DNA of 64,000 nt from Oculina patagonica (GCF_052425735.1 NC_135761.1:9052001-9116000); one strand, 5' to 3'. Positions 12,801 through 58,200 are shown, counted from the first letter of the stretch. The notes: generated by a model from the sequence alone, not told the origin. Translations and numbers: made by a program.

Positions 12801-15800
12801 GAAATATGCACCATGAACAATTACTTGACTGTGGCCGGTGCGGTGGCCCAATGGTTAGAGCGCTGGACTCCGGATCAAGCGTTCCGCGTTCGAGCCCTGG
12901 TCAGGGCCACTGCGTTGTGTTTTGGAGCAAGACAGGTCTATGAATGGATATTAAATAATAAAGATGGTAAATTTTAAGCTCGGTAATAAATAATGAAGAT
13001 GAAGTATTCAACATACTGCTAGGAGCTTAAAATTTACCATCTTTATTATTTACTACAAACTTGATGAATTCGACATTCTGATCCTAGCAGTATGCAGGAC
13101 GCGTGTCACTTATCAACCTAGTAAAATGGCCCAGCTCACAACGAGTCTCTCATAGCTCAGTTGGTTAGAGCGCCCAACCGGTATCTGGGAGGCAATGAGT
13201 TCGATTCCCGTCGGGGACTCAGAATTTTTCTTTGTCCCATGCTCGTGTCATGTTGAATACTTCACCTTCATTAAATGGATATTGCTGAGGGAGGGGGGTG
13301 GGGGGTATCCTAAGACGGGCTAGCATCCTATCCAGGGGGAAGACCGATGCAAACTTGACCTTTTTTACCAATCCCTTGAAACATTTTAGGTGTTATGATT
13401 CTCATTTTAAATTTTTCATTATCAGGCTGCCAAGCTGCTTGATAATAGCAGATCTCAGACCATTGGAATCATCATGAGTAGTCTGAGCTGTCAGCTGGAG
13501 GATATCAGAAACGCAATCTACAAAATGGACACCTCTGTTCTTGACATGGACGGGTAAGATTACAAACAAAACGTACCACATTCCCACAAAATTTACACCT
13601 TCATTTTCCGGAGCCGATTCTCTATAAAGAACTAAAAGGAACCCTTGTCGTATAAAGTTGAAAAAAATGTTTGTTACCGATAAGGATATTCCGTCTCAAA
13701 TTTTTACAGCAGTGCTGCAAATTAAAGTACCAAGACAAATTGGTTTTGTGTTTTGGCATTTTTCAAGCATATTTTATTCTCTTCATTCACAGATTGAAAG
13801 CGTTGTACGACATTCGCCCAAGAGCAGATGAGATCGAACTGATTACAAAATATCAACAAGAGAACCCAAACGGTAAGACTTGGTAAATTGCATTTCTTTT
13901 TTCTGCTTAAGCCTGCGTACAGCCGGTAAAATGTTTATAGCAGATAATAGTTTTGGAACAGTGAAGCTGCTAAGTGGCAATTCTCTGCCTCATCCCCAGG
14001 TGTCCTCCCGCTTGGTCGTCCTGGTGGGTTGTGGGCGACCCCCTCGCTCACCTAACCATCACCCCCCCCCCCCCCTTTTCCCCCCCCCCCCCCCCGGGCC
14101 GGGTAAGTGATTTACTAGTAGCTAACCTTTGTGTCCATATAGTAAGCTCAATTTTTTTTGTATTCTGTGTTTGGTCTCGTTTCAGTTCTCCTTGACAAGC
14201 CAGAGGAATTCTTACTTCAAATACATAAAATGGATCACTTTGCCGAACGACTGGAATGTTGGTTATACAGGAATAAATTCACAGAAACCTCAACCGCCAT
14301 TGGTAAGGCCAAGTCTGTTTAAGTGTAGTCTATGTTCGGGGGAGAGAAGGGAAAGGGAGGGAGGTTTAATCCTTACCCCTGGGTGTATATGTGTTTGCGG
14401 ATACTTTGGCCTGAGACTTACGCTAATTATTTTTTCACTAAATAATCATCATTTTATATCTCTTTTTCTCATTTTCTGCATTTTAGTTTGTAAACCTTGT
14501 TTTTAATTGAACCCTTGCCCCAACAATGCAAGATCAATTGTCTTTGCTAGTAGCGGGGGCAAGCAAACTTGTAACCATATTTATAAAAAAAAGAAACAAA
14601 TATCGTTCACGTTCATGTCCAAGTTAATGTAGAGTTCTGGTCGCGAAAGAAATTTTTTTTGTAGGATCCTTCAATTCTTCTCCTTTATAAAAATCAACAC
14701 TTCTAGGTAACTTAAATACAACTTGTACTGCCTGTTTTATTAACTGCGAACGCTGTCGAATGCAAAGTGACGAGTTGTATGTAATCAACTAACTTTTTTG
14801 CTTTTCTTTTCTTTAGATAGAAGATTATCTGCAATATGCGAGGCCTGTAGTCTGCTTCGCACAAAGTAAGTACACACGGGGACTAGAGCAGTTTTCACTT
14901 GAGTGTCGAAAGTAAATTGCGTTTGCTTTGGTTTTGCATTACTACGCTCAGTGATTGGCTTAAAAATCTCGCGCCACTTTCTCAGCCAATCAGAACTAAA
15001 ACCAAAACCAATCGTGACTCGCTCGCGCACGTTTTCCCGCGCTTCATGCCAGCTACATGTATTTGCTTCGAGTTTTGATTGGTTCACTGGATTGTCTGTG
15101 TCCTTTGTGATTGGCCGGATTAATAACTTTGGTTTTGGTTTTACGACACTTAATTGAAAACTGCTCTAACAAAGGAAACATAGCCAAGTGTCTTTTAAAA
15201 GACTTTTGATATACCAACGCAGCCAATACTTTTATTTACTGAGAGTTTTATTTATGTTTCAGCGAGGACGTGTCGTTTGTTCTGTCGATAGTCCTAACAC
15301 TGGGGAACTTCATGAATGGAGGAACGAACAGAGGACAGGCAGATGGCTTTCAATTGAGCGTTCTAAATAAAATCAAAGACGTTAAAACACAGGTAGGTAA
15401 AGAGCAGTTTCAGTTCACATACAACTGACGCTTTAACTTTCATAACCAATGTTGGATTTTCCCCTTTAAGTAGGGTTGACGTTGAAAACTGCTTAAAAAC
15501 AGGCGGAAAATAAAAAAAAATTCTCTAGCAGCCATAGGAATGTTTTGCAGTGAACATAAAGATTGGAAGTGGGAAAGTTGTCCTCGGGCGGCGAAAATCG
15601 CCTGTCATCTGCAGAAAAGAAAAACCCTGGACTGTGATCGGAATCAAATGCATAAACGCTCCCCTTCTTATGTAACAAGTAGAAATCAGAATGTCAGATC
15701 ACGTATTTTAATGCATTGTTAAATTTGTTTTAGGACAATGAAACGAACCTTATGAAATACATTGTGCAAGTCTACTGCGACAAAAGACATGGAGGCGAAA

Positions 15801-55200: not shown

Positions 55201-58200
55201 TAACAATTTTGGTCTGTGAAGTTTTTTCATGACCTGTACTGACTGCTATTTTAATATCATGTCTGGATAATGCATATTAAGTAAATTTTTCTTCTCCTCT
55301 TTTTTATAGAAAGGACATTAAACCTGATTTTAATGTGGCCATTAAGGTTTTCTGCATGGTGAGTGTCAGCACTTTAAGAACAAAGGTCTGCTTGTTTCTC
55401 CATCTGATCAAGGCTTCATTCTTGTCCCCAGAACCACTTGTCCCTCTTACTGTAGCCTGGGGCACAAGCGCCAGTAAGTTGAGACGAAACTCGCCGTACA
55501 CGAAGAACACTTTATTAACTGAGGGCGAACGAGAAATGACAAAGACACTGAACTAAGCGGTTTCCTAAGTAACCAGTCTCTTCGGGGGCGTGGGTTCGTA
55601 TCCCACCGCTGCCACCACGCCAGTAAGTTGAGACGAAACTCCGTACACGAAGAACACTTTATTAAACGAGGGCGAACGAGAAATGACAAAGACGCTGAAC
55701 TAAGCGGTTTTCTAAGGAACGACCTAATTATGCTCGGCGAGGGAATTACAACAATGGCAGAGCGATTAGCAGAGCGAAGCTATGCGAGCTATGGCGAAGC
55801 AACAAGTGGCTCTGGGACACACAATTTGATTGGCCAGATTTTTAACAAAAGGAAATTTAAATCTAGCCAATGAAATCAACTATTTTAAAATCCCTTACAA
55901 CAAAATGATTTAAAAATGGTTGATCTGATTAGCTAGATTCAAATTTCCTTTGTTAAAAATCTAGCCAATCAAATCATGTGTTCACCAGAGCCAACTTGTT
56001 TCTCGTGCACAGGCACCCCTTGCTAAAAGATACAAGCAGCTCTGGGGACAAGAATGACCAAGGCTTGAGTCTGGGTGTACAAATAAGAGATATGCCTTAG
56101 GGATTTTTTCTTCAAAGAATAATTGTGCTCATGTATATATCTTATTAACCACGCACGAGGGCCGTACTGGGCAAAAATAAAGTAATCTGATTGGCTGATT
56201 TAGTTATTGGCCCTCGGACCGCCTTAGTCGTGTAATAATTGTTAATAGTGAGCATTTTTTGTCACAAATACGTCAGTCAATTGTTTATTTTTCAGAATGT
56301 TAAAAAGACTGTTGTAGCCACCCCAGCCACACCAACCAAGCACAAGATCTTCCAGTCACCAAAAGTTGTTAAAGGAATTCTAGTAAGGATAAGAATTTTA
56401 TTCAAAATAGCTGAAAATTATTGTTCTGTTGGGCATGTTGTTCAGTCTCGTACTTTTTACTTATGTATATTGTTCAAATGTTTGTTGTTCACAGCGAAGA
56501 GGATCAGATACCCCTTCTCCAGGTGTGTACCCCTTTTATTTTGAATTTTTAAGGGTTCGTTGACTGTGTTTATTAAACAGTGTATAGTAGAAGCCCGATT
56601 TCTTGTTCGGCTCCCAATCAATAGCTTGGACGAAATTCCTTTCCGGTTTTGTGCTTTACTCAGTTGTACACTGCAACGTTGTCAATATTTCATAAATTGC
56701 TTGAACCCATTTTCCTTTACCCATGGTGATTCAGGAAAATCAGAATTCCATTGTAGGTCATCGTTTTTGTTCCTGAATCTTTGTTCCCCAGGTTATTGGG
56801 TTACGAGGCTTTCTTTGCATGCTGAACTATCAGTAGTACATAATTAACCTGATAGCTATTATTACTGGTATGAATCATTTGCAATATTGTTTGTGTTTTT
56901 TTTTTTTTTTAATTTGCTTTCTTTTTAATTAGCACCTCAAGTTGCTGCATCGCCACACACAGTGTTCAGAACCAGCAGCTTCTCTCTTGTTGGAGTGACA
57001 CATGTCAATCTGCCGATCATCAAATCAAAGCGATTCTCCCTTGATAAGGTGGGTTAGAACTTGCCAATTTTGTCAACTACAATCTTATGTATAAAGGCTA
57101 ATGATACTTGTCGTGTTCTTGATCACATTTTGTTATTCTCTCTTCAGGTGCCTGATAGCTGTCCTTTGAGTAACTTCATAGAAATGAGAGCTGAATGTTC
57201 CCCTCAATACAGCAACCGTGTGAATGGTTTTCTGGTAAGAGCACACGTGCATACATACTCAGACAAGACTGTTTAATATTTACAGTAGGCACATTTTAGG
57301 TACAGTGCACTTCAGTCCACCGCAGCTCAGAGTAGCACTCACTTGGACCCAGAAAGGCAAACACCAAAGTGGCAGGTCTTAGGTTGGGTTTGGTTTCAAG
57401 GACTGGTATATGCTAATGTCGCTTGGGTTTGTGCCAAAGACCCAGAAACGATAAGAGAGATTTCCCAGTTTAGGGAAGAGGAAAAGATGATGATGTTGAT
57501 AATGATGCACCTCAAACTGTTTGTAGTACATGAATGTATTGTCTGTCTTTCTTTTCCTTCAGACAATCCTAGAAGACATTGGTGGGTATGGTGCATGGCA
57601 GAGAAGATGGTGTGTGTTACAAGGTGCTGTCATGTGCTACTGGAGATACCCTGGAGATGAGAGTATTAAGGTACTACAAGTAACTTAACTGAAGTGTGTG
57701 AAGACACATTTGATGGTTCAAGCTATGTCTTTATGCAAGATAATTCACTCCACAACAGGGCTGCTAAAAAAATCTAGTCCAATCATCTGGTGACCCTAAT
57801 CGGCGGAAAGATGAAATGTCACTAGATTGCTTGTGGTTAGCTTTTACTCCGGTTTGTTTGCGGTTAACTTTTATTTGTTGGTTAGGGCAATATACTATCG
57901 CCATTCTGTCATTCCACCATTCCGCCGAATAGGGTCACCCCAATCATCTGGGACAAGAAGATTTTCCAGTTAGGAAATTAACTTTTCGTGCTTATTGATC
58001 CAATGGGCAAGGGCCCAGGCAAGTCATACCATATTTACTTGAATAAGCGCCGCGGCACTTATTTAATTTTTCGCGCCTCAAGTGTGGTGCTTATTCGAGG
58101 GCGGCGCTTCTTTAAAATTTGGACGCCGCAAAAAATCTAATCTAAACAAAACTTCTACAGTAACTAAACGAAGGGTCTTTTGATTGTCAGTATTCGTCTC

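Follow-up and report, generated by a model that had tools for sequence, protein, structure and literature searches.

A copy of the 3′ part of a mature tRNA-Leu between Ty3/gypsy long terminal repeats in the coral Oculina patagonica: a probable integrated product of primer over-extension

We have analysed a window of 64,000 nucleotides from the coral Oculina patagonica (GCF_052425735.1 NC_135761.1:9052001-9116000), in which a 328-bp insert at 55469-55796 interrupts a repeat resembling a miniature inverted-repeat transposable element (MITE). The inserted element lies on the minus strand. Read in element sense it consists of a full 179-bp long terminal repeat (LTR), the complement of positions 39/41-76 of a mature tRNA-Leu including the CCA, and positions 77-179 of the LTR. 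The features of the locus are as follows.

55416-56057, no strand assigned: host MITE-like repeat, apparently intronic, the target of the insertion (its terminal inverted repeats span 55416-55449 and 56024-56057)
55466-55468, no strand assigned: left copy of the target-site duplication, aag on the plus strand (from the LTR ends of nine other copies and the empty MITE site)
55469-55571, minus strand: partial LTR covering 79-179; this 3′ part holds AATAAA and the U5 end and is, in element sense, downstream of the tRNA copy
55572-55573, minus strand: junction microhomology ac, equal to tRNA 39-40 and LTR 77-78 (from host tRNA-Leu genes and the LTR alignment)
55574-55617, minus strand: DNA copy of mature tRNA-Leu 41-76, with the tRNA sense on the plus strand and its complement in element sense
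55618-55796, minus strand: complete 179-bp LTR, CGCCATAGC...ACTGGCG in element sense, assigned to a Ty3/gypsy family that has a primer site for tRNA-Leu
55797-55799, no strand assigned: right copy of the target-site duplication, aag

The LTR parts form direct repeats at 55469-55573 (105 nt) and 55618-55720, the second of which continues to about 55800, and AATAAA is present in both. A preliminary description made from the sequence of the window had correctly recognised the repeats, the tRNA segment with its CCA at 55615-55617 and the minus-strand order of LTR, tRNA complement and partial LTR. Its extent of 333 bp has to be reduced to 328 bp according to the ends of the nine other LTR copies, and the LTR does not start with TG as it had proposed: TGCTT belongs to the MITE. 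At the junction the tRNA complement ends in ...GACTGG, followed by GT, which is shared between tRNA and LTR, and then by TACTTAGG..., which is the LTR from position 79. The junction microhomology is thus 2 nt (ac, 55572-55573), a correction of the earlier reading. Unambiguous tRNA sequence amounts to 44 nt (55574-55617, the complement of tRNA-Leu 41-76), and with the two nucleotides common to the LTR the copy comes to 44-46 nt.

The two LTR parts differ at 5/101 sites and by a 2-bp indel, with private changes in each. Differences were polarised by the per-column majority of the other LTR copies, at the eight differing columns only. One derived base is common to both window parts and occurs in no other family copy, which indicates a single source molecule; divergence and shared base together fit a single source and an old insertion. 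For comparison, the two LTRs of a complete element on C2 (L019) differ at 4/179 sites. Internal element sequence is found nowhere else in the window. ARAGORN calls no tRNA over the insert region, and Rfam gives there just a sub-threshold tmRNA-clan hit on the T arm and chance-level microRNA-like hits on the MITE hairpin. The insert does not contain the head of a tRNA-derived short interspersed element (SINE), i.e. a 5′ tRNA-like part with sense A and B boxes; only tRNA 39/41-76 is present. Nor is it a two-LTR circle junction, as the second LTR starts at 77 of 179 and not at the U3 start.

The boundaries of the insertion follow from the host repeat. At least 40 related copies of the MITE exist in the genome, and 29 paralogues read ...GGGGCACAAGGAACAAGTGGCTCTGGGG... 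across the uninterrupted insertion site. The uninterrupted copies carry GGGGCACAAGGAACAAGTGG at this place, and the second ACAAG motif is native MITE sequence. Under a 3-bp duplication the empty site is expected to be GGGGCACAAGCAACAAGTGG. Excision of 55469-55796 together with one aag regenerates the MITE family sequence with matching length and a single substitution. As the two ACAAG motifs are already there in the MITE paralogues and nine copies fix the LTR ends, the target-site duplication (TSD) is aag and the insert is 328 bp long. ACAAG had previously been taken for a 5-bp duplication, and the presence of two ACAAG motifs in other MITE copies had been named as evidence against the insertion. 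Such copies do exist; they refute the 5-bp duplication and leave the insertion itself standing. The MITE also contains a long internal hairpin (55814-55984, arms of 44-53 nt) with sub-threshold hits to plant and animal microRNA-precursor models, which probably reflect a mere resemblance of the MITE hairpin.

When 55618-55801 was searched against the whole genome, about 10 copies with 88-96% identity were found in addition to fragments, about 18 matches in all. Only the window pairs two LTR matches 150 bp apart. The complete element L019 (C2:11996985-12000739) has two LTRs 3.6 kb apart; its 5′ LTR is followed by the primer site TGGTGGCAGCG and then by CTACGGTTCC, and the polypurine tract AGAAGGAAGAAGAAG precedes the 3′ LTR. 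A longer, 5′-truncated copy on C1 (L053) has RVT_1, RT_RNaseH_2 and the zinc domain Integrase_H2C2, in that order. The RVT_1 and integrase hits fall below the Pfam cut-off, and the copies are degraded. By sequence relationship, then, the LTR in the window belongs to a Ty3/gypsy family primed by tRNA-Leu. Solo LTRs make up 4 of the about 10 family copies.

LTR elements usually have TG...CA termini and 4-6 bp target duplications. All nine other copies of the window LTR start with CGCCATAGC and end with ACTTACTGGCG (ACTGGCG), giving 5-nt inverted termini CGCCA...TGGCG, and a 3-bp TSD is present in 6/6 family insertions with both flanks: CTT (the window, aag on the plus strand), AAG, CTG, CTG, CTC and TTG. 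CGCCA...TGGCG termini are seen in the window family and in a related family on C6 (L019, L004-L007, L055 with L104; C2, C10, C1, C8, C13, C6), and a 3-bp TSD in 7/7 insertions of the two gypsy families together. The TGGCG end, which had earlier been noted as a caveat, is therefore the norm here and in the related family, as is the 3-bp TSD.

The origin of the middle segment can be judged against the host tRNA genes and against regular family members. A pattern search gave 17 host tRNA-Leu(AAG/TAG) genes. All 17 read GTTCGAATCC, i.e. have A58, and none is followed by CCA (0/17). The TAG gene at C6:23707294 has a GGGGG variable arm identical to that of the insert, and the insert departs from this gene at a single base, position 58 (55599), where it has T in place of A; this is the base directly past the canonical 18-nt primer site. 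Three sibling 5′ LTRs (C2, C12, C6) are followed by TGGTGGCAGCG, an 11-nt tRNA match, and then by unrelated CTACGG.... Because the siblings have a primer site of 11 nt, the extra 44-46 nt with CCA and T58 must have been copied from mature tRNA and not inherited with the genome of the element. Matched exactly, the tRNA-with-CCA 25-mer has just four non-gene sites in the genome, the window included, and the contexts all differ. These results bear out the earlier suggestions that 55599 corresponds to tRNA position 58 and that the template was a mature tRNA-Leu 3′ part with a non-encoded CCA; host genes with T58 or CCA, which would have spoken against both, are absent among the 17. The proposal that G>T at 55570 marks m1G37 (1-methylguanosine at position 37) was discarded. 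In the LTR alignment T is the family state, found in nine other LTR copies, and the G in the second window copy at the equivalent of 55570 is a private change of the full LTR copy.

The read-through in the window is not an isolated case. Four further independent tRNA-Leu read-through products were found in three gypsy families, each directly after the U5 end of an LTR. Three of the four were found with the T arm-acceptor 25-mer including CCA and the fourth among the siblings of one of them; landing sites were placed relative to sibling elements.

C12:29425543 (L054): position 58 is T, no other change; the copy reaches 38-43 and is joined by TGGTG microhomology to an inverted internal segment
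C6:21789046 (L055): position 58 is G, no other change; the copy reaches the variable loop and lands about 1.2 kb past the primer site, 1 nt of microhomology
C9:13683586 (L056): position 58 is A, with an apparent deletion of 2 nt should the end be at 37; the copy ends at 37 or about 44 and lands about 1 kb downstream, with TGC or two untemplated G at the junction
C4:51945973 (L087): positions 57-58 deleted (2 nt), with G37>C, A39>G, A34>G and A64>T in tRNA sense; the copy reaches 29-31 and lands in gag, 340 nt downstream, CC microhomology

All five products are joined to their landing site by 1-5 nt of microhomology. Regular siblings of the other read-through elements have primer sites of 11-18 nt without extension. 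At least three of the other elements have two LTRs and a TSD (C6 CTA, C4 ATTAC, C12 GGAAC), which means that these products were completed and integrated normally. More specifically, the C12 element (C12:29425243-29428230) is LTR-bounded with TSD GGAAC, even though the tRNA copy is joined via TGGTG to an inverted internal segment. In the C4 element (L087 with L103, C4:51945900-51946420), which has the 5-bp TSD ATTAC, tRNA-Leu(AAG) has been copied through the anticodon. In eukaryotic tRNA-Leu(AAG), A34 is edited to inosine (I34). No GAG anticodon exists among the tRNA-Leu genes of the AAG/TAG type, and G34 in the C4 copy fits inosine-34 read as G.

The substitutions in the tRNA copies are concentrated at one position. 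The window, C12 and C6 copies have one substitution each in 46, 48 and 36 nt, and 3/3 are at position 58; the chance of this under random placement is about 1e-5. Together with the C9 copy, these products have substitutions at 58 only (T, T, G and A retained). Over the five loci the spectrum at position 58 is T, T, G, one deletion and one unchanged, with no C. Published reverse transcriptase (RT) signatures of 1-methyladenosine (m1A) followed by A consist of T and G mismatches with little C (PMC4787781), and the coral spectrum matches this behaviour. The last copied tRNA base is 39-41 in the window, 38-43 on C12, 37 or about 44 on C9 and in the variable loop on C6, while the C4 copy is mismatched at position 37 and runs on to 29-31.

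Taken together, the insert is probably a one-off defective reverse-transcription product of a coral tRNA-Leu-primed Ty3/gypsy element, formed by over-extension of plus-strand strong-stop DNA, aberrant transfer and integration. This is the first of two explanations offered in the preliminary description (an integrated plus-strand strong-stop product with tRNA read-through and template switch), and it is supported by the 11-nt primer site of the siblings. Plus-strand strong-stop DNA, made up of the LTR and the primer site, would normally end after 18 tRNA nt, just before m1A58. Here RT would have passed m1A58 with a wrong base inserted, leaving T in the tRNA-sense strand, and would have continued to about tRNA 39-41, just 3′ of m1G37. 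The over-extended 3′ end could not have paired at the primer site; it may instead have annealed by 2 nt inside the LTR (position 77) of minus-strand DNA and then have been extended to the U5 end. The predicted product, LTR plus 44-46 nt of tRNA complement plus LTR 77-179, would have both normal LTR ends and no internal region, and the integrase of the element could have inserted it with the family-typical 3-bp TSD. Landing inside the LTR at 77 accounts for the loss of the entire internal region with both LTR termini kept.

A rival explanation differs in when the internal region disappeared. In this later-loss version, a read-through product was integrated as a full element, arranged either as LTR-tRNA copy-internal-LTR or as a composite 5′ end that leads into the primer site, the internal region and a 3′ LTR, and was shortened in the chromosome afterwards by solo-LTR-type recombination or by microhomology deletion. 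We regard this as unlikely, though it deserves serious consideration. With 4 of about 10 family copies being solo LTRs, LTR-LTR recombination is common, and internal sequence and a 3′ LTR are retained in three or more of the remaining four read-through products. However, a simple chromosomal deletion must begin exactly where the tRNA copy ends, and the route through a composite 5′ end requires another round of copying from the tRNA primer or from a second one. A landing within the LTR in one step is the kind of transfer found at the other four loci, from which the window differs just by its more distant landing site. Loss in the same step is what we infer, as it takes one event and has parallels at the other four loci; the sequence of the insert would be the same by either route.

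It can also be asked whether the template was a complete tRNA. If the primer or template was instead a 3′ half produced by cleavage within the anticodon loop, RT would have run off at about 38-39 and then jumped, without an m1G37 stall. In 3/5 products the copy does end at 38-43, where stress-induced tRNA halves start, and from general knowledge of RT, template jumping is favoured by run-off ends. The C4 product, however, runs through the anticodon to 29-31 and the C6 product goes no further than the variable loop; these end points mean that full-length tRNA was the template at least sometimes. A stop of HIV-1 (human immunodeficiency virus type 1) RT at the position-37 modification on a full-length primer is also documented (PMC13191261). 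We consider a tRNA half as the template improbable.

An assembly artefact, i.e. a chimeric join of LTR reads, is very improbable. Repeats are error-prone in assembly and only one assembly is at hand, but the LTR parts differ at 5/101 sites plus an indel with private changes in each, the MITE empty site is clean and the 3-bp TSD family-typical, and four analogous loci lie on other contigs. The least credible explanation is the second one of the preliminary description, a miniature non-autonomous family like terminal-repeat retrotransposons in miniature or SINEs that transposes as a unit with a tRNA half between terminal repeats: LTR ends and a TSD would permit remobilisation in principle, but among the about 18 genomic LTR matches the repeat-tRNA-repeat layout is found in the window alone, the four non-gene sites of the 25-mer share no context, the insert lacks a polypurine tract as well as the A box and the rest of the tRNA 5′ half, and the idea is therefore rejected. 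The genome search with 55618-55801 that had been proposed for deciding between the two explanations gave no other repeat-tRNA-repeat copy and hits to Ty3/gypsy LTRs, i.e. the outcome expected of a one-off.

Several points weigh against over-extension as we describe it. That m1A58 gave the mismatch and m1G37 the stop is what we infer from the copies, with m1A58, m1G37 and I34 in the coral presumed from their general conservation in eukaryotes. The window copy ends 2-4 nt short of the expected m1G37 block (39-41, not 38). The C9 copy keeps A58, which would mean either error-free bypass or an unmodified tRNA. A microhomology of 2 nt is weak, and a later deletion could give the same junction. Finally, the structure is known from one assembly.

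Some tRNA likeness past the primer site is also seen in other elements. Two Leu primer sites extend a few bases beyond 18 nt (L096, C7:2378215-2378249, and L097, C2:6716028-6716062); one of them reaches 53 with one A of A58/A59 deleted and the other about 52 with a T54 mismatch. A regular leader of the C6 family (L091, C11:10440090-10440330) has about 27 nt of likeness to the tRNA 3′ half past the 18-nt primer site (shuffle p about 0.007), and the regular leader of a Leu-primed element on C9 (L100, C9:1433710-1433920) contains GAAGCGACTGGTG (shuffle p about 0.002). The degenerate, roughly colinear tRNA-Leu complement in the latter two leaders may represent old fixed read-throughs or selected over-extension sequences. 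In the leader of the window family itself an 8-nt relic, GAACCCAC, lies at a nearly colinear offset and is not significant (shuffle p about 0.06). Elsewhere in the window, ARAGORN calls a tRNA-Thr(GGT) at 13145-13220 on the plus strand; this anticodon is unusual in eukaryotic nuclear genes, and the call may be the head of a tRNA-derived repeat or a pseudogene.

The reaction behind the insert is known from retroviruses. Retroviral plus-strand strong-stop DNA normally ends before m1A58 (PMC13191261; PMC8599865, in TRMT6 mutant cells). Minor over-extension products of HIV-1 end at 55, at 54 and at the position-37 modification, long over-extended products are regarded as unfit for strand transfer or integration, and a lentiviral primer over-extension sequence has been described (PMC13191261). 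The coral products resemble those of HIV-1 in the step concerned and in the normal stop before m1A58 with occasional bypass; the next strong stop of HIV-1, at the position-37 modification, may have its counterpart in the coral. The C6-family leader, with its likeness to the tRNA 3′ half past the first 18 nt, is reminiscent of the lentiviral over-extension sequence. They differ in that the HIV-1 products come from in vitro reactions or infected cells, while the coral ones have been integrated into the germ line and kept; HIV-1 is also a lentivirus using tRNA-Lys3, unlike the coral Ty3/gypsy elements with tRNA-Leu. Among unintegrated forms, Colicelli and Goff (J Virol 1986) reportedly described a clone of circular DNA from murine leukaemia virus in which tRNA sequence separates the two LTRs. 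It likewise has a copy of the primer tRNA past the primer site beside the U5 end, followed by LTR sequence; in that circle, however, the second LTR is present from the U3 end, whereas the coral insert is integrated with a TSD and continues from 77.

Complementarity to tRNA beyond a short primer site is also known from Ty1, where boxes can pair with the T and D arms of tRNA-iMet, and from Ty3 with its bipartite primer site (PMC5371799). Both are tRNA-colinear, as in the window, but they are conserved functional motifs in every copy, while the 44-46 nt in the window are private, perfect and not present in siblings. Reverse transcription that joins tRNA to LTR-element sequence is the common theme with tRNA-derived SINEs, for whose birth Ohshima and Okada are said to have proposed a strong-stop DNA model in the 1990s, and with the Helenus elements. 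These exist in many copies and carry the 5′ half of the tRNA as a tRNA-like RNA polymerase III promoter, unlike the insert, which is a 3′ part, antisense to the element and single-copy. Helenus LTR elements have tRNA-like LTRs (PMC10886601). In the literature searched we found no report of integrated germ-line read-through copies with modification signatures or of microhomology rescue, and the exact tRNA-LTR junction had no match among metagenome contigs. The reaction is known and the element ordinary, and what makes the case interesting is the fossil record of primer over-extension.

In retrovirus biochemistry m1A58 sets the end of plus-strand strong-stop DNA and longer products are dead ends. 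The coral loci would be integrated descendants of such products, indicating that LTR elements of a distant branch can bypass m1A58 in vivo and that microhomology-guided rescue followed by integration can yield deletions, an inversion and a mini-element. LTR ends that continue into over 18 nt of tRNA, CCA included, would be easy to count in any genome. We suggest tentatively, as a possibility that the five loci leave somewhat short of even, that over-extension with microhomology-guided transfer is recurrent and sometimes heritable in coral Ty3/gypsy elements and seeds tRNA-derived sequence past the primer site; it may also account for the build-up of tRNA-like sequence beside primer sites. If this is true, such seeding would be the origin of leaders of the over-extension type and possibly of tRNA-related non-autonomous elements. 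Since each copy is complementary DNA of a mature tRNA, it preserves the RT signature that the modifications of this tRNA left in an animal cell of the distant past, and the integrated copies would then constitute a genomic fossil record, millions of years old, of m1A58, m1G37 and inosine-34.

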